NCBI GenBank assembly: GCA_965240325.2
Contig: OZ251229.1
Location: 1,922,001 to 1,986,000, forward strand
DNA: 64,000 bases
Reading direction: 5' to 3'
Source: Rebecca billardiae RCC1528
Lineage: Eukaryota > Protista > Haptophyta
In this document: one piece after another, positions 52,427 through 62,986 of the stretch
Position numbering within the stretch: the first letter of the stretch is position 1
How the letters are laid out: each line of letters starts with the position of its first letter
Translations under genes and position numbers: made by a program
The notes under the pieces: model-generated
The model's input: only the letters and a program-made list of their open reading frames with translations
What the model was told of the DNA's origin: nothing
Database searches by the model: none

Positions 52427-54697
52427 CTAAGCCTGCTTGAAGCTCGGAATGATCATGCGCTGGCGCAGTGCTTCTCGGCGCGCGCTCTTACGCCTGTCCA
52501 GCTCATCGCGGCGGGTGGCGACGAGCTCCACGATCGACTCGATCGCCGTGTCCTCGAGCTGCTGCGGGTCCGGTGGGGTCGCGCCGACAGTGCCACCGCC
52601 CTCCACGTAGCAGCCGTCCACCTCGTACAGGTGCACGATGAGGTGGCACAGCGCGTCCGTCACGGCAAGCACGTTCATTAGGAATTGGATCTGCATGTTG
52701 AGCACAAACTGGACAGCCAGGCCCCAGTTCGCACGCGCATACGCGAGGAGCTCGATCTCCACGCGGCGGTCCACCTCCTCCTCGATCTCGGCACGCTGCG
52801 CCTCGCTCAGCCCGGCGTACGCGCTGAGCGCCCGCCGCACCGCCAAGCGCCAGGCCCAGATGGCGAGGCACGCGACTGCAAAGGCGGTGATGACCATCTT
52901 GGACACCTGCGCCTTCTTGATCGCCGGCATCGCGCCGGAGAAGTCGAGCTCGTTGCGGCGCTTGACGCGCGAGCCCGCGATGGCGTACCCGGCGGTGGCG
53001 CACGACATGCCCAGCGCGAACCCCGCAAACCACCAGTCGCCCACAAGGTGCAGTGGGAGCAGGAAGGTGCCGAACGAGAGGAAGAAAATAATCATTGGGA
53101 TGAATTGCATCATGAAGCCCCAGATCGAGCTCTCGGGCACGAGCGACTTCCACAGCGAGAGCGCGCGGACGAGGGCGGGCGCGATGGAGAGCAGCACCGG
53201 CGCCACCTTGGCGTACACGAGCAGGGACACCTGCGCACGCGCTGCGGCGACCAGCGCTGGCTTGGTCGGTGACGCGCCCACGTCTGCAGAGATCAGCCTG
53301 TCCATGTCGAAGGTCGCGTACCACGGCACGCAGGTCACGACGATCGGTGGCAGGATGTTGAAGAAGAAGCCGATGCGCGCGCGCCGCTGCGACTCGAGGA
53401 ACGCGCGAGCGATGCCGTCTTGCGCCGGGCCGACGAACCCAGCGGTGCGCGCGTCTGCAGAGCCATCCTCGCCGCTCGCGCCGCCAGCGGCCGCAGGTCG
53501 CGACGAGCCGTCAGCGGCGTCGGCCGGCCGTGTGCGACACCCACAGCAGCGGCATCCGCAGCAGCCGCAGCAGCGGCGGAGGGTGACGGTGTACGCGAGC
53601 ACGTAGCAGACCATCGCCACCAGCTGGCCGAGGATCGGGATGCCCTGCATCCCAGTGCTGAGCGCCCAGACGTGGCACTGGGTCTGCACCGACTCCAGGT
53701 ACAGGTCGACGCGCCCGCAGAGCGCGTCCAGCGCCTGCGAGCTGAAGCTGCTCACCACGGAGTCGAGCAGATCGCTCGCCAGCTGCGACTGCGCCGCGTT
53801 GATGGAGCCCAGGAGCTCCTCCTGCCGCGCCTGCGTGCCCGCGCTCGCAGAGGCCGAGCACAGCGAATCGCGGATCCGGCGCGTTTGCGCGCCGCACGCC
53901 GCGACGCACTCGTTGCGCACCGCGCTGCCGACTTCCCAACCAGTCGCACTGAGGACATTCTCCCCGGCCCAGCCCAGAGCGTCGAGCGCCTCTGCCGCCG
54001 TCTCGCGGGACGGCGCCACCCGGTCGGCCAGCTCGGAGATGCTCCTGCTGCAGCGCGCAAGCAACGAGCTGCGTGTGTATGCGCTGCTGTTGCGGGCCAC
54101 GTCTGCGGAGGCGTTCGCGGCGAGGAGAGCGGTCTCCACCTCGAACGCGGCGGCATCTGCAGCGTCCATACACTCACGCCCAACCCCGTCCTCGAGGTAC
54201 CCGAGCTGCTCGTCGCACACGCGCGCGCACTGCTCGAAGGAGACCGCCTCAAGCCGATCGAGGAAGCCGACAACGTCCACCGTGGACTGGCGGTCGGGTG
54301 CTGGGCTGCACGCACTCTGGTCGCCCGCGCCCGTCGAGTCCGTCGAAGGCACGACAATGCCGGTGACGAGGCTGACGAAGAGCAAGAGGATGATGGTGAT
54401 GAACGATGACCTGCGCCATGCAACGTAGTTCACGGCTGCCGAAGGCTGCGACTCCTCCTCGGCCTTCTCGTCATAGAACCGAAGATCGCGCGCGCCGTGC
54501 GCGTTCAGATTGCCCGCATACGCGCGAGGGACGTGACGGATGAACCACGCGCGCTCTATCTTGCCGCGAGGGACGTGACGGATGACCACTCGTGCTACTC
54601 CCGCGTCCTTTCGCCCGCCAAACGAACGGGCGGATCGGCGTGCGTCCGCTTGCGGCGACGCTTTCACGTCGTGGCAAAGCCACGTTCCATCCAGCAT
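52427..54697 (-). CDS. Multi-pass membrane protein with a Cys-rich luminal domain; function unknown, start uncertain
   Basis: Long ORF with an N-terminal TM helix after YVAWRRS, a Cys-rich loop, and about eight further TM helices. Confidence 0.7.
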   Translation of the reverse strand: MLDGTWLCHDVKASPQADARRSARSFGGRKDAGVARVVIRHVPRGKIERAWFIRHVPRAYAGNLNAHGARDLRFYDEKAEEESQPSAAVNYVAWRRSSFITIILLLFVSLVTGIVVPSTDSTGAGDQSACSPAPDRQSTVDVVGFLDRLEAVSFEQCARVCDEQLGYLEDGVGRECMDAADAAAFEVETALLAANASADVARNSSAYTRSSLLARCSRSISELADRVAPSRETAAEALDALGWAGENVLSATGWEVGSAVRNECVAACGAQTRRIRDSLCSASASAGTQARQEELLGSINAAQSQLASDLLDSVVSSFSSQALDALCGRVDLYLESVQTQCHVWALSTGMQGIPILGQLVAMVCYVLAYTVTLRRCCGCCGCRCCGCRTRPADAADGSSRPAAAGGASGEDGSADARTAGFVGPAQDGIARAFLESQRRARIGFFFNILPPIVVTCVPWYATFDMDRLISADVGASPTKPALVAAARAQVSLLVYAKVAPVLLSIAPALVRALSLWKSLVPESSIWGFMMQFIPMIIFFLSFGTFLLPLHLVGDWWFAGFALGMSCATAGYAIAGSRVKRRNELDFSGAMPAIKKAQVSKMVITAFAVACLAIWAWRLAVRRALSAYAGLSEAQRAEIEEEVDRRVEIELLAYARANWGLAVQFVLNMQIQFLMNVLAVTDALCHLIVHLYEVDGCYVEGGGTVGATPPDPQQLEDTAIESIVELVATRRDELDRRKSARREALRQRMIIPSFKQA
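54523..54585. repeat. 21-bp perfect direct repeat CGCGAGGGACGTGACGGATGA between divergent genes, possibly a cis-element
   Basis: Copies at 54523-54543 and 54565-54585; contains an ACGT core. Confidence 0.6.
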
Positions 54698-55685
54698 GGA
54701 GGCGGCCCTTCTCGGCGCGCTGGACGCCCTGTCCATCGAGCATGAAATCTACCGCCACGCGGCGGTGAAGGACGTGAAGGAGGCTCTTGAGGTGGAGAAG
54801 TCGTGCGGGCTTGACGCGGTCGTCGCGGCCCGCACGAAGAACCTCTTCTTGACGGACAAGAGGAAGACGCGCCGCTGGCTCGTCTCGGCATCGATTGAGA
54901 GCAAGGTCGATCTGAAGCAGCTCACCAGCGCGCTGCAGACGACGGACCTCAAGTTCGCCTCCGACCTAACCGAGACGATCGGTCTCGCCGCGGGCTCGGT
55001 GACCCCTTTTGGCGTGCTCAACGACAGCGCGCACAAGGTGATCTCGGTCGTCGATCAGTCGCTGCTCGACGGCTCGCGCGGTGCACGCGTCCTCGCGCAC
55101 CCGATGCACAACGAGGCGACGGTGAGCATCTCGGCGGATGGTCTCCTCAGCTTCCTCCGCTCGCGGCAGCACGATCCGATCATCGTGCGCTTCGCCGCCG
55201 ACGGCGCGTGCGAGGTGCTCGCATCGCCCGAGCAGCCCCCCGTCGCTCAGCCCGCTGCCGCAGCTGCGGCGGACGGCGCAGCTGCGGCGGACGGCGACGC
55301 GAGCCAGGGCGGCACGGCGGGCGATACGTTGGAGCTGTCAAAGAAGGCGCAGAAGAAGCTGGCGAAGGGGCGCGTGAAGCTCTCCACCATCGAGCAGAAG
55401 GAGGCGGCGAAGAAGCAGGAGAAGCCGCGCGCCGCGCAGCAGGGCGCGACCGCGGCGAGCGTGTATGGCAAGGTGGAGGCTGCGATGGTCGATGAGCTGC
55501 TTGGCCGGATCCGGGAGGGCGCGCTGGCGCTGGGCGAGGGCGAGGGCGCCGAGCTCGAGCTTCGCGAGCAGCTCGAGCGCATGATCGCGCCGCACATCGC
55601 CGCCGTGCGAAATGCGGGTTACGTCGAGGGCCACAGCGCGCGGCAGACGCAGCCGGCAGTCAAGAATCCGGTCCTCAAGTTCTGA
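54696..55685 (+). CDS. prdX: PrdX/ProXp-ala (YbaK family) aminoacyl-tRNA deacylase with Lys-rich C-terminal extension
   Basis: TKNLFLTDK, GSVTPFGVLND, HPMHNEATVSI. Confidence 0.85.
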   Translation: MEAALLGALDALSIEHEIYRHAAVKDVKEALEVEKSCGLDAVVAARTKNLFLTDKRKTRRWLVSASIESKVDLKQLTSALQTTDLKFASDLTETIGLAAGSVTPFGVLNDSAHKVISVVDQSLLDGSRGARVLAHPMHNEATVSISADGLLSFLRSRQHDPIIVRFAADGACEVLASPEQPPVAQPAAAAAADGAAAADGDASQGGTAGDTLELSKKAQKKLAKGRVKLSTIEQKEAAKKQEKPRAAQQGATAASVYGKVEAAMVDELLGRIREGALALGEGEGAELELREQLERMIAPHIAAVRNAGYVEGHSARQTQPAVKNPVLKF

Positions 55686-56912
55686 GCCAGCAGCAGGCGC
55701 GGTTGGCCGCGATGCCCGAGCAGACGGGTGGCTGCGCGCACCGCAGATTCTGGCCGACGGCTGCGGCGAGGCGCCGATGCGCTCGACAGCACGCGATCGG
55801 GCCTTAACACTCTCGCCGCACCAGCAGCCACCACGCTTGCCCCGGGGCAGAGCAGATGCCGATGCGGCGACGCGACTCTGACGCTTAGCTATGATACGTC
55901 CACGACATCGTCAGGCGGCAGTCTCCGACTCCGCCCGGGGACGTCTCAACCCAGCGGTGAACGGAGTGCGACGGACCATTGAACGGTATAGTCACAGTAG
56001 TCAGCATCACTGAGCAGGCACGGCCGCTCTACTGCTCTGATAAACTTCTAGCTTCCGAGATAGTACTACTAACTACGCTCTACAGTACGACAGCACGGTC
56101 GTGATCTCAGACGAAGCAGAACTCCGACGATGCCGATCGGTATGACGGAGAATCATATCCATGACGATCACCGGGTTACCAGTCGGACCGCCCACTACAG
56201 TAGTGGCGGGCCCGGGCACTACTTACTCTCTCGGCGCCGTGATCCGCGTGCGCGGATCGGACTCCAGCGCTAGCAGTCCACTGCTAATTCAGATATTACT
56301 ATACTCTGAAGTCGCTCAGAGTTAGTCGCTAGCTGTACGAGTATAACGACGGAGTACGGTCCGCTAGTCGTCGTCCAGTGCCGTCGGCGTTACACAGTGG
56401 CAGTCAGTCACTGATTGCGCCGCATCTGGCGGGCCCCAGCCCGCCGGTGGCGCTGATGGCACCAGTGACTCTGACGAGTTGTGACGACGAACTAAGTCTA
56501 ATAATAGCGCAGCTGCTAGTCGTTAGTAATGTACTACGACGACGATCGACTGATTCTGTCGATCGTCACGCACTTCTAAGTAAATGAACGGGTCACGATG
56601 ATATTCGAATTCGTTACTCAGAACGGCGGCCATGGCGCCGGTACCCGCGGGTACGCGGCGGGACCGCGTTGCCCGCCGCCGCCCAGTAGTTATCGAGACG
56701 ATGCCGAGTCGCCGATGCCGGCCCCGATGGTACGGGTCGGAGCTTATCATTAACTGCTGCTACTCGGCGCGCGCGGACGATGTCTCTGGCTAGTGGCTCT
56801 GAGCTACGCGCGCCGCCTACGCGCATGGCCGATGCCCGATCGGCGGGATCGGCGCACCGTGGACTCGAGGCAGCTCCGCCAACTGCTGTTCGTCGGCCTT
56901 GCTCGATGATCA

Positions 56913-58200
56913 TCACGCAACGAGTGGCTCGCCGGCGCTCGTGCAATCCTTCTCGGCAACCAGCGAAGCCAGCATCACCCGGGCGCCAGGAGAGCCGTCC
57001 CACCAGCGCCGCGCGTGCATCATCTGGTAGTTGCAGATGAGCGCGACGTCGCCAGCCTGTGCCGGGTGGGTCGGGGGCGGCGCGTGTGCGTTGGGCAGGC
57101 ACGCAGGTCAGGGAGCGCGCGCGAGCGGGCACGGCGACCGGAGCACCGCACCGCGCACCGCCCCCTCGCCCCACCGGCGCCGGTGCGCGCACCTGCCACT
57201 GCAGATCGACGGCGTTCTCCTCGCACAGCCGCTTGGCGTCGAGCAGCACTTGCAGGTCAACCGAGGAGCCGTCCGCAAAGCGCACGCACTCGTCGATGGC
57301 CTCCTGGGTGGGCACGTCGTGGAGCGGGTCGAAGCCGCCGCCATCCTCGCCCACCTTGGTGAACTCGAGCGCGTTAGCCGTCGTCGCGATCAGCTGGTTG
57401 AAGAAGCACAGCCGGTCGGTGCCGGGCGCCGCCTTGATCGCGTCCAGCCGAGGCGTCACGCAGCGCAGGCAGTCGTCGCTCAGCTTCGCGCCGCCCGGCC
57501 CGACGCCCCACTGCCACTCCCAGCCGCCGGCGGCCATGCGCGCCTCGCACTCCTCGCGCGTCTCGACGTGGAAGAACGAGCGCCACGACCGCCCCGCCCC
57601 CTTCGACGTGTCCTGCGCGGGCCCCGCGAACACGGTGTACCGCACGCCCACGCTCTCGCACTTGGCCACAAACTCCGGGTGCGCCTCGCGCAGCTGGCTC
57701 AGCACGACGTGCGAGGGGGTGAGGCCGGTGGCGCCGCCCGTGCCGGGCGGCGCGGGCGTCTCGCAGCAGAAGCACACCTTGCTCGGCCACAGCGGCGTCT
57801 GCGCCTGCTCGTGGTGGAAGACGAGCCCGCCGCTCTTGCCTTCGTTGGTCGTGCAGATGCGGTTCGCGCGGCGCTTGCGCACCGCAAACGACATGGAGCG
57901 CTCGTACGAGAGGTCGTCCCAGCCCTTGAAGGCGCAGACGAACGCGTCAAAGTCCTCCGCGCCGCGCAGCGGGAAGCCGCGGAACAGCACGGCGCCGTGC
58001 TGCGTGAGGAGGGACTCAAGTGCCCCTTGCTCCTGCTCCACCCAGCGCGCGACTGCCGGCACGTCCGCGCTCGGGTTGGCGCACTCGACGATGAAGGGAA
58101 GGGTGACGCCGCCGTCGAAGGCACGCTGCTCCTTCATGGCGCCCACGCGCCCGAGCGCACCCACAGCGGTGCCGACACTGAATGCGGGCGGCGCGACCAT
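56913..58200 (-). CDS. TauD/TfdA (clavaminate synthase-like) 2OG-Fe(II) dioxygenase; exons 58200-57193, 57056-56913
   Basis: HGAVLFRGF, FHHEQAQ (HxE), FFNQL, and spliced WQ|AGDVALICNYQMMHARR...RVMLASL. Confidence 0.9.
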
Positions 58201-58585
58201 CGCGGCTGCCGAGACGTTGGACGTCGTCACGTCCACAGGAAGCCTCGCGGAAAGTTGCGTTGTGACGGTTGAGCCGAAACCCGGCAGGGCAGAGGCTGCG
58301 CAGGTAGCTCTGCAGCGCAGCCACCGATTTCGGCGCACGAGTCGAGTTTACTCCGTTTACCCGCGTCCGACCTTGCATGGCGTCGACGGTGACCAATGCG
58401 ACGGAAGCGCAGCGCCAACGGCGTACGACGCGCAGCGGACGCACCTCCCGGGTCTGTCGCCGTGGCAGCAACCGCGTCTTCGCGAGTTGGCGACCCTCGC
58501 CGCAGCGCGACACAGACAAGCCCGTGATGCCATCCGCAGAGAGATGAATCGTCGAGCATGCAACATCGACGCGCCATCCTCGTCC

Positions 58586-59200: not shown

Positions 59201-60079
59201 GCGAACCCGCAGAGGAAACATTGCGACAGCACTGGCACGGCCCGCCGACCCCCCCGCCCGCCAGGGCACAGTTTGTATCGAAGTGTACCAGTTCGCACCC
59301 AGATATGTACCAGCAGGTGTACCAAATCCGACCAAGATGTACAAAGGCCGTGCGTGGGTGCGCGCACACAGTCACGCGCAGTGGCGCGGGCGCAGCGCAT
59401 TCGAGCGATCGCGCACGCGTGCGCGTTCCGCTCGCCCACCGCGCGCGGCCTGCCGAGCGCGCACGCGCGCGCATGACGGCATCCGCCGGCCGGCGACCGC
59501 TGCGGCCGGTGGCGCATCAGGCCGGCGCGGCCGACCTCGGCCTGCGCGTCGTCCGCCGGCGGCCGCGCCACATCTGCCGTTAGGCCGGGCGCAGCAGCGG
59601 GCACGCCACCTGCCGTGTGCGGCATGCTGGTGGCTGGCTGCTGCAGCAGCCAAGCCGCCGCGTGCCTCGCGCTGCCGTAGTCAGCTTGCCGGGTGGCCAG
59701 GCGCGAGTAGAGAGGGGTGAGCACGGCATCGCCTTTCCCACCCTCCTTTGCCGTCCCCAAGCTTGCGAAGACGGGGTTGATTCGGCGGATGTCCGAAGTC
59801 ATCATGACGGCCTCGACATCGGTGTCGCGCTGTTCGAGGGATTGCTCGAGCTCTGATACTGATAGCGCCCGCTCGGCACCCACTCGGCCTCCCGCAGGGG
59901 CTCGTCGTGCTTGAGCTCGGGGTCAAAGTGGTCCGTCCCGCGTAACGTCGTCGAATAAGGCGGGCGTCGATGTCGAGCATGCCCACCATGTCGATGATGG
60001 GCGCACTCGTGCCCCGCACGACTCGTCTAGTACATTGGGAAGCAGCCGAGTCAGCCGCGATCGCGGTCCGGCACCCTGA

Positions 60080-60415
60080 TCGGTACCATCAGCGATTCTG
60101 GTACATCTTGGGGATGAGTTGGTATGTACGACATTTGGTAGAGTTGGTACATTCAAAAAGGTACCAAAATGTACTGAAAATGTCGTCGTACCAAAGTGTA
60201 CCATGATGGTACACCCAATGATGATGACGACATTTGGTACATTGTCAGGATGCTTTGGTACACCGATTGGTATGTGACACACAGTTGGTACACTATGAGT
60301 CTATTGTAATTGGTACATTTGGTAGCTACATCTCTGATGACTACTGTACATGCATGTACCAATCCGCAATCGTGTACCAATTCTGTATCAAAGTGTACTG
60401 TACCTGCATGGTACA
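60080..60415. repeat. Dense bidirectional array of TGTACCA/TGGTACA motifs (smaller cluster at 59281-59345)
   Basis: Many GTAC-cored motifs in both orientations in an AT-richer tract. Confidence 0.7.
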
Positions 60416-60771
60416 TCCGCTGACCGGCTGAGCTCGGTAAGCTACACTCGTCACTCCTCATTCTGAGCTCGGTTTGGTCCGCCCATCATTCTAGACTCCG
60501 CAGTCTGTATATTATTTGGCTTAAAGTTCCAATAATAACTGATTGAATCTAACTGAGACTACGCAGAGTACGGGCCGAGCTCCAGTCTAAAACGTCGCCG
60601 TACTGTGACACTGATGATTCATCATGATGGCGCAGCAGCAGCGCCGGCTGAACACCCAGTGCCCAGCGCACTGTGGCCATGGCTGACGCTGGGCACGGGT
60701 AACTTTGCTGCGTGCGCTCAGCTCGGGCCCGCGGACTGACTCGGCGCTACAGTAGCGCAAGCGTGCCAGAG

Positions 60772-61326
60772 TCAGCTGCGAATGATCTTGTTGAGCGTGA
60801 TGTCGAAGAGGAGCGTCGCGTCCGGGGGAATCTCCGGTGGGGCGCCCTTCTTGCCATACCCCAGGCTCGGCGGGACCTCGAGGCGCGCCTTCTCCCCGAC
60901 GCGCATCCCCAGTACGCCCGAGTCCCACCCTTTGATCACGTCGCCGGCTCCGAGCGTGAAGTTGAAGTTCGCCGCGCTGTCAAATTTGGAGCCGTCCGAA
61001 GCGAGCGTGCCAACGTAGCGCACGACCACGTCATCGCCTCGCACAGCCGCGTCGCCGGAGCCTTCCTTCAGGACGGTCTTCTTGACTGTCGTGCCCTCGC
61101 GTGGCGCAATGTGCACGCCAGGCAACGAGAAGCGCTGGCCAGTCTGGACGAGCTTGCCGTTCTTGGCCCCCGTCGCCAGCGCTTTCTTGATCAGTGTCGC
61201 CGATACTTCCCCATAGGTCTCCTTCACACACTTGGCGATGGCAGGACGTGAGGCACCACCAGGCTCCGCGAGTACTCCGATTGAGCCAATGACCTTGTCC
61301 AGCACCGTGCGCGCCGGCGGCGCCAT
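60772..61326 (-). CDS. Linker histone H1 globular (H15) domain fused to an FKBP-type peptidyl-prolyl isomerase
   Basis: N-terminal IGVLAEPGGASRPAIAK...LIKKALATGAKNGKLVQTGQRFSL. C-terminal VRYVGTLASDGSKFDS, FTLGAGDVIKGWD, GMRVGE, LGYG, IPPDATLLFDI. Confidence 0.9.
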   Translation of the reverse strand: MAPPARTVLDKVIGSIGVLAEPGGASRPAIAKCVKETYGEVSATLIKKALATGAKNGKLVQTGQRFSLPGVHIAPREGTTVKKTVLKEGSGDAAVRGDDVVVRYVGTLASDGSKFDSAANFNFTLGAGDVIKGWDSGVLGMRVGEKARLEVPPSLGYGKKGAPPEIPPDATLLFDITLNKIIRS

Positions 61327-61524
61327 CGTGCGGAAATGATGAGTACAGTTTACTAAGAATAAGAGACGCACACAGCTCAGGCAGGCGAGATTGTATCGTA
61401 AAGACTCTTCGCCCGTGGAAGTCGGAAACGTCTGCTGGCCTGGGCGCCTAGCTCACCAGCACGGCGTTCTGCGTGCACGCCGCCGGACCAACGCCCGCAC
61501 GTCTCGCCGGCAGCAGCGACGACG

Positions 61525-62267: not shown

Positions 62268-62336
<69 letters not shown>
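62268..62336. repeat. (TA)n microsatellite
   Basis: Directly visible. Confidence 0.97.
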
Positions 62337-62338
<2 letters not shown>

Positions 62339-62927
62339 CATATGTATACATATTCCGATCTGCTGAGCTACTCCGTCTCCGCGTGCCGAGTTCAGAGGCG
62401 ACCAGCCGTCCACCTGTGCGCTGGCCCGGGGCCGGTGGCTAATGATGAGCCTCATAATGAACTCGGCAGCGGGTACTTATAGAATGATGGCAATAATAAC
62501 CGTTATACTTAATAACTTAAACTAGGCTGCGCCTATGACGACTGTAGTGACGAACAATACTCTCAGGCCGCGGCCGTTCTGCTCAGCTAGGCCGTCTCAG
62601 CGATTCGTTGATTTCGGGCCGAGTCACTGCTAGCGACGAGACACTGACACAGTGACACTGACGAGTCGAAATTACTATACATGAGCAGTCGTAATATGTT
62701 TCGCATGCCTCGAGTCGTAGTCGATACGATGATCTCACGGAGTCTGCCGTGTCGGCTATACGGTACTCGGTACCGGGCGCAGCCTACGGCCACGTGGCAC
62801 TGGCACGCTGGGCATTAACGCCCACGTCTCGCGGACCGCCGCGCGTATAATTTAATATGCGCCACGCGCGCGCCGTAACTAGTTACGTATAGTGATGATA
62901 TTTTTCAATATATATATATTAACTAGC

Positions 62928-62929
<2 letters not shown>

Positions 62930-62986
<57 letters not shown>
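62930..62986. repeat. (AT)n microsatellite
   Basis: Directly visible. Confidence 0.97.

Follow-up and report, generated by a model that had tools for sequence, protein, structure and literature searches.

We analysed a 64,000-nucleotide stretch of contig OZ251229.1 from the haptophyte Rebecca billardiae RCC1528, hereafter the window, and found on its minus strand a complete gene encoding a linker-histone-type (H15) winged helix followed by an FKBP-type peptidyl-prolyl isomerase domain (Table 1). The reading frame opens with an ATG at 61326, closes with a stop codon at 60772-60774 and comprises 184 codons, giving a protein of 184 aa and ~20 kDa. Upstream of this ATG only a GTG at 61371 is in frame, and the assigned start agrees with the N-termini of relatives (MP/MAP...TVLDK).

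Two Logan contigs derived from ERR14847148 and ERR14847151, L001 (1318 nt) and L002 (1142 nt), encode the identical protein. Both start at window position 61368, have the ATG at 61326 as their first ATG, and are colinear with the window to 60051 and 60229, respectively, indicating that no intron is removed from the gene. They likely represent a transcript with a 42-nt 5' UTR, the library type of both contigs being unverified, and these two short public sequences suggest that the window's copy is expressed. The single intronless 184-aa ORF described in an earlier sequence-only reading of this DNA was thus confirmed, by the ORF list and its translation and by two public contigs (1.1–1.3 kb) colinear with the window.

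The GC content of the window is high (56–77%). An antisense ORF at 60712-61251 overlaps the well-supported CDS on the opposite strand in this GC-rich DNA; it was rejected as a gene and taken for a by-product. An organelle-targeted product was also rejected: the protein has no N-terminal extension, and helix 1 begins at residue 8, which leaves no space for a targeting peptide. No classical NLS is visible in the window's protein.

Two other ORFs in the window matched known families, one the TauD/TfdA dioxygenases and one the YbaK-like/tRNA_edit (aminoacyl-tRNA editing) proteins, and neither shows an evident link to the H15-FKBP gene. Just 3' of the CDS, within the putative 3' UTR, lies a cluster of GTAC-core motifs in both orientations. 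It holds 11 of the 14 exact TGGTACA matches in the window, for which 1.95 would be expected over the whole window, and 17 of the 94 GGTAC matches, within 333 bp. The spacing is irregular and does not form a clean tandem repeat; the cluster could consist of sites for a GTAC-recognising factor or be a decayed repeat. Upstream of the gene are two (TA)n microsatellites.

Table 1 Features of the H15-FKBP gene and its surroundings, with positions in the window.
Feature	Position	Strand	Basis or remark
H15-FKBP CDS, complete, single exon	60772..61326	-	ORF list and translation, both Pfam domains, start shared with relatives
Putative 5' UTR, 42 nt	61327..61368	-	Shared start of two independent Logan contigs (L001, L002)
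H15/GH1 winged helix, residues 5-68	61123..61314	-	PF00538, profile against PDB, AlphaFold2 models, Foldseek
Flexible inter-domain linker, residues 69-81	61084..61122	-	Mean pLDDT ~60 over residues 71-80
FKBP-type peptidyl-prolyl isomerase domain, residues 82-182	60781..61083	-	PF00254, PDB matches, invariant pocket
Putative 3' UTR or downstream region	60051..60771	-	L001 colinear to 60051; holds the GTAC-core cluster
GTAC-core motif cluster	60082-60415	both	
Further GTAC-core motifs	59284-59324		
TauD/TfdA-family dioxygenase ORF	56617-58338	-	E 1e-16
YbaK-like/tRNA_edit ORF	54582-55682	+	E 1.5e-16
(TA)n microsatellite	62268-62353		42.5 copies
(TA)n microsatellite	62931-62986		28 copies

A winged helix and an FKBP domain separated by a short linker

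A Pfam scan identified Linker_histone (PF00538) at residues 11-62 (E 9e-9, 35.9 bits; curated cut-off 22.4) and FKBP_C (PF00254) at residues 94-178 (E 7e-31, 106.8 bits; curated cut-off 21.1), and no other family. The HMMER check proposed for the query therefore placed both domains above their curated cut-offs.

For the N-terminal domain, a single-sequence search with residues 1-80 against PDB sequences returned only marginal matches to yeast Hho1p (E 0.08). A profile built from 30 N-domains of the family (alignment A2) and run against the PDB matched the globular domain of human H1.0 (E 1.3e-9) and chicken H5 (4qlc and 1hst, ~1e-7), as well as Hho1p GI/GII and the H15-like winged helices of KAT6B (E 5.5e-5) and HP1BP3 (8e-5). 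The AlphaFold2 secondary structure comprises helices at residues 8-19, 27-38 and 43-55 and a short beta-hairpin wing (60-62 and 65-67). In the full-length model (mean pLDDT 87.8), an FKBP barrel follows the low-confidence linker, and the orientation of the two domains is undefined because the pTM is 0.57. Modelled by itself, the N-domain gave a pLDDT of 81.8, and its top Foldseek matches were globular domains of linker histones, including Hho1p, nucleosome-bound H1 (5nl0_Z; TM 0.77, rmsd 1.6 Å) and nucleosome-bound H5 (7xvm; TM 0.78). The winged-helix (WH) domains of MORF and KAT6A, including a KAT6A WH-DNA complex, were also found. Generic bacterial winged-helix regulators mostly ranked lower, with YlaN-Fur at rank 10 and an IclR-type protein at rank 16 as exceptions. 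Foldseek E-values are weak (~1e-2), as can be expected of a domain of only 74 aa, and the matches were judged by TM and rmsd and by how consistently the top matches were of one kind. The Pfam match above cut-off, the family profile and the predicted fold together support the earlier assignment of the N-terminus to the H15-like winged helices. No PDB chain was common to the match lists of the H15 and FKBP parts.

The FKBP half matched wheat FKBP73 FK1, FKBP52 FK1, AtFKBP53 and FKBP12, among others, in the PDB, with domain E-values of ~1e-25. Compared with wheat FKBP73 FK1, its 40s loop is four residues shorter. FKBP positions that are invariant in the 63 aligned sequences include Y104, F115, D116, F121, F123, V130, I131, W134, Y157, I166 and F174, which we take to be the pocket positions Y26, F36, D37, F46, F48, V55, I56, W59, Y82, I91 and F99 in FKBP12 numbering. 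The FKBP domain is thus complete, as the sequence-only reading had it, and the invariance of its pocket positions indicates that the pocket is likely active or at least ligand-binding.

The two domains are not joined directly, as had been supposed. They are separated by a conserved low-confidence linker of 13 aa here and of 12–14 aa in 63/63 members. The protein ends two residues past the FKBP domain. It has no Lys-rich tail of the H1 type, as noted before, since the 13-aa linker is followed only by the FKBP domain and these two residues; C-terminal extensions are just 0–5 aa in the 63 members. The charge is divided between the domains. The H15 domain has a pI of ~10 in the window's protein and of 9.1–10.7 across all 63 members; its net charge lies between +3 and +6 for the haptophyte group and between +5 and +10 for the green-algal/stramenopile group. 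The FKBP domain is near-neutral, with a pI of 6.4 here and a family median of 6.4 (range 4.8–9.6). No acidic tract was found in the H15-FKBP sequence.

A family shared by haptophytes, green algae and stramenopiles

The first protein search returned 976 matches. Pavlovales sp. CCMP2436 (76%) and Diacronema lutheri (71%) gave the best ones, which points to a pavlovophyte-like haptophyte as the host. Checking the best 120 of the 976, together with two later proteins, against the HMMs gave 90 with both domains. Sixty-three relatives were aligned (alignment A1), and 63/63 match both Pfam families, which excludes a chance fusion. A gene-model or assembly chimera was likewise rejected, the architecture being common to ~90 independent relatives.

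Among the named sources, haptophyte members come from Pavlovales sp., Diacronema and Haptolina, and green-algal members from Micromonas pusilla, Tetraselmis striata and T. astigmatica; diatoms are represented by Epithemia and Seminavis robusta, and a pelagophyte (MMETSP1329) is also included. Many members stem from marine metagenomes, metatranscriptomes and MMETSP transcriptomes, indicating that members of the family are expressed. In the ESM Atlas, clusters of 73–100 members have the H15-FKBP architecture; among the taxa labelled there, Chlorophyta and Bacillariophyta are the most frequent. Sizes concentrate at 176–193 aa. N-terminal extensions are mostly 2–6 aa, with short Lys-rich ones in a few green-algal or diatom members. 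Searches with the H15 part alone gave 44 and 8 candidates, which say little on the full phyletic range; the only additions were Seminavis robusta and some models that read through introns. In four haptophyte orthologues (P0182, P0183, P0184 and P0186), the FKBP domain reads through after TLG-G-G into out-of-frame sequence, which indicates that in those genomes an intron interrupts the FKBP domain; the window's copy has none.

Of 149 FKBP domains placed in a tree, the 87 fusion domains lie on one side of a branch with an SH-aLRT support of 98, and the 62 non-fusion domains lie on the other. The comparison domains come mostly from tandem-FKBP matches, within a set limited to the proteins retrieved. 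This topology is compatible with a single origin of the fusion, as far as the sequences indicate. Close kinship with the tandem-FKBP proteins was rejected, as these fall on the other side of the tree.

Members appear in public records only as "peptidylprolyl isomerase", "FK506-binding" or "hypothetical protein". A literature search whose coverage lacks most subscription journals, and from which absence is not proven, found no description of an H15-FKBP fusion. The fusion is conserved and automatically tagged with both domains in public databases, yet apparently uncharacterised. The earlier suggestion of a possibly uncharacterised module holds as far as its description in the literature goes; the fusion is, however, not confined to this genome, the family being widespread and both of its domains already tagged.

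Residues at the DNA-contact positions of H1 and H5

Residue equivalences were taken from the HMMER alignment to H1.0 (numbering as in GH5), and the DNA-binding residues from the literature. In GH5, site I consists of K69 and R73 with R47, R74 and K85, and site II of R42, R94 and K97 (PMC2685081, PMC3130272); K69 is reported to contribute most to binding (PMC3130272). In the window's protein, R47 and K52 correspond to R27 and K32, both invariant in the family, and K69 corresponds to K47, which is basic in every member. At the other positions, K40 is replaced by A20 (basic in 0% of the haptophyte group and 13% of the other group), R42 by P22 (basic in no member), R/K73 by A51 (0% of the haptophyte group and 87% of the green-algal/stramenopile group), R74 by T52 (3% and 32%) and R94 by S67 (0% and 52%). 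In haptophyte members, an arginine (R65) is invariant two residues ahead of the R94 equivalent.

The wing also differs. The Pfam Linker_histone match ends at model position 62 of 74 and the predicted turn between the wing strands is two residues long, indicating that the GH5 beta-turn with K85 and V87 is missing. Four wing residues, Q61, G63, Q64 and F66, are invariant and specific to the family (motif Q-x-G-Q-x-F). A separate 301-aa protein from Logan, P0189, is Lys-rich and H1-like with two H15 domains, and its second domain has the same short wing (T-G-Q-R-F). Judged by sequence, the fused H15 domain may have come from a donor of the P0189 type, and the wing shared with P0189 suggests that a short wing may serve real linker histones in some protists.

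In our reading, a DNA-binding surface equivalent to site I appears to be kept, whereas the multi-duplex contact geometry of the chromatosome is not evidently preserved, and least so in the haptophyte clade, where this gene belongs. This bears on the idea that the H15 domain docks at the dyad in the manner of the H1/H5 globular domain, with contacts to the dyad DNA and to both linker arms. Strict docking of this kind, a sub-case of a tethered FKBP, would put the FKBP domain at the exit of the H3 tail, in competition with canonical H1. The predicted fold is nearly superposable on H1 of chromatosome structures, the R47, K52 and K69 equivalents are invariant, green-algal/stramenopile members are often basic at the K73 and R94 equivalents, and the wing of P0189 may mean that a short wing suits linker-histone function. 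However, the R42 equivalent is never and the K40 equivalent rarely basic, the haptophyte clade has lost the basic residues at the R73, R74 and R94 positions, and the protein lacks a C-terminal tail that could stabilise binding. Moreover, docking work assigns the choice between on- and off-dyad binding to V80, K82, K85 and V87 around the beta-turn (PMC6129471), and these residues are absent or changed here. With R42 non-basic, the arginines lost in haptophytes and the K85/V87 turn cut to two residues, docking like that of H1 cannot be assumed. The prolyl isomerase placed at the nucleosome dyad in the sequence-only reading is thus not upheld in that form, and we regard dyad docking as doubtful.

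A probable tethered prolyl isomerase compared with known nuclear FKBPs

The H15-FKBP protein was compared with the nucleoplasmin-like (NPL) FKBPs, namely S. cerevisiae Fpr3/Fpr4, S. pombe Fkbp39, Drosophila FKBP39 and Arabidopsis FKBP53. As in these proteins, a C-terminal FKBP domain is combined with an N-terminal module, chromatin-directed in the NPL-FKBPs and probably so in the algal protein. This module is a monomeric H15 winged helix in the algal protein, in contrast to the pentameric nucleoplasmin-like domain with acidic tracts in the NPL-FKBPs. The FKBP domain of Fpr4 acts at nucleosome entry/exit and linker DNA and isomerises prolines of the H3 tail (PMC5476585, PMC7026663). That domain is Lys-rich, with a pI of 10.2 compared with 5.7 for the cytosolic Fpr1, and its own four basic patches bind linker-bearing nucleosomes at entry/exit (PMC5476585). 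The algal FKBP domain, with its pI of 6.4, is not strongly basic, and the protein is much smaller (184 aa). With a near-neutral FKBP domain and all the basic character in the H15 domain, a basic, DNA-binding function would reside in a separate domain. By analogy, the algal protein may also bring an FKBP to linker or entry/exit DNA, but in a modular way.

With the linker histones H1, H5 and Hho1p, the protein shares the winged-helix fold, the G-S-S-R...K residues at helix 2 and the K69 equivalent in helix 3. It differs from them in the absence of a Lys-rich C-terminal tail and of the basic residues of site II, in the short wing turn, and in having an enzyme at the C-terminus. It carries an H15 domain but, without tail or site II, is not a linker histone. 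KAT6A/KAT6B WH1 and HP1BP3 offer a parallel in the use of an H15-type winged helix as a targeting module on another activity, but there the partner is another kind of domain, such as an acetyltransferase, and never an FKBP, and the proteins are not close in sequence. Plant GH1-HMGA and GH1-Myb/TRB proteins also use an H15-type domain for targeting, with AT-hooks and a Myb domain as partners. We found no described case of an FKBP as the partner of a targeting H15 domain. FKBP25 (FKBP3) has a basic tilted helix bundle in place of the winged helix at its N-terminus, and no sequence match to the H15-FKBP protein was seen. The best reading is that the protein works like the nuclear FKBPs (NPL-FKBPs and FKBP25); it is, however, a member of neither group.

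The invariant FKBP pocket and the basic H15 domain make a nuclear, DNA- or chromatin-tethered, active prolyl isomerase the best reading of the protein, to which we assign a probability of about 0.6. Its nuclear location, its binding to DNA or nucleosomes, its enzymatic activity and its substrate are what we infer from these features. In such a protein, the basic winged helix would bind DNA, most likely nucleosomal or linker DNA, through a surface formed by the start of helix 2 (G-x-S-R...K), helix 3 (K47) and the short wing. The binding mode, be it on-dyad, off-dyad or to plain duplex, probably differs from that of canonical H1. The linker of fixed length (12–14 aa, ≤ ~45 Å) would keep the FKBP domain near the bound site, where it may isomerise or bind prolines of chromatin proteins. 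The obvious candidate substrate would be the N-terminal tail of H3, which exits the nucleosome near DNA entry/exit; the Fpr4 FKBP domain provides a precedent (PMC5476585).

A narrower form of this proposal, closer to the earlier one, is an "H1-guided" histone prolyl isomerase, in which an H1 fold brings an otherwise plain FKBP to the place where linker histones bind the nucleosome, a design that would have arisen independently of the NPL-FKBPs. We regard it as less likely than not. The part of the earlier claim that concerns a chromatin route independent of nucleoplasmin-type FKBPs is in keeping with an architecture different from that of Fpr3/Fpr4, but dyad docking, as stated there, does not stand.

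Other readings fare worse. The H15-like domain may serve as a protein-protein or dimerisation module and not as a DNA binder, with the FKBP acting as chaperone for a specific, perhaps non-chromatin, partner. Some H15-like domains, for example in plant GH1-Myb proteins, mainly mediate protein-protein contacts, and the GH1 domains of plant TRB/SMH proteins mediate oligomerisation. In the algal family several canonical DNA-contact residues are missing, and the invariant wing motif and K11 are atypical as H1 DNA contacts. Against this, the H15 domain is uniformly basic (pI 9.1–10.7) and the FKBP domain is not, and the best-kept basic residues are DNA contacts of GH5 (PMC3130272), which makes a pure interaction module improbable. 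A tail-less, mainly structural mimic of H1, filling linker-histone sites without compaction and with the FKBP domain as a bulky cap or scaffold, would fit the conserved absence of a Lys-rich tail and the finding that the Fpr4 FKBP domain alters array behaviour independently of catalysis (PMC5476585), but it is very improbable, since a pocket that does not vary across three algal phyla speaks for selection to bind a ligand or substrate.

What histone proline isomerisation does in vivo is still poorly understood, partly because the known nuclear FKBPs (Fpr3/Fpr4 and FKBP53) are pentameric histone chaperones with several functions, whose chaperoning, DNA binding and catalysis are difficult to tell apart. 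If the algal protein is indeed a tethered isomerase, it would be far easier to interpret, as a 20-kDa monomer in which targeting and catalysis fall to different domains. That the fusion and its linker length are preserved in three major lineages of phytoplankton argues for a functional pairing. The fusion also hints at a functional link between FKBP activity and the linker-histone site, in agreement with the position of the Fpr4 FKBP domain on entry/exit DNA (PMC5476585). If the H1-guided reading is true, such an isomerase might take the place of the NPL-FKBPs, or act against H1, in haptophytes, prasinophyte green algae and ochrophytes, and would offer a simple monomeric system in which to ask whether isomerisation of H3-tail prolines at DNA entry/exit regulates chromatin.
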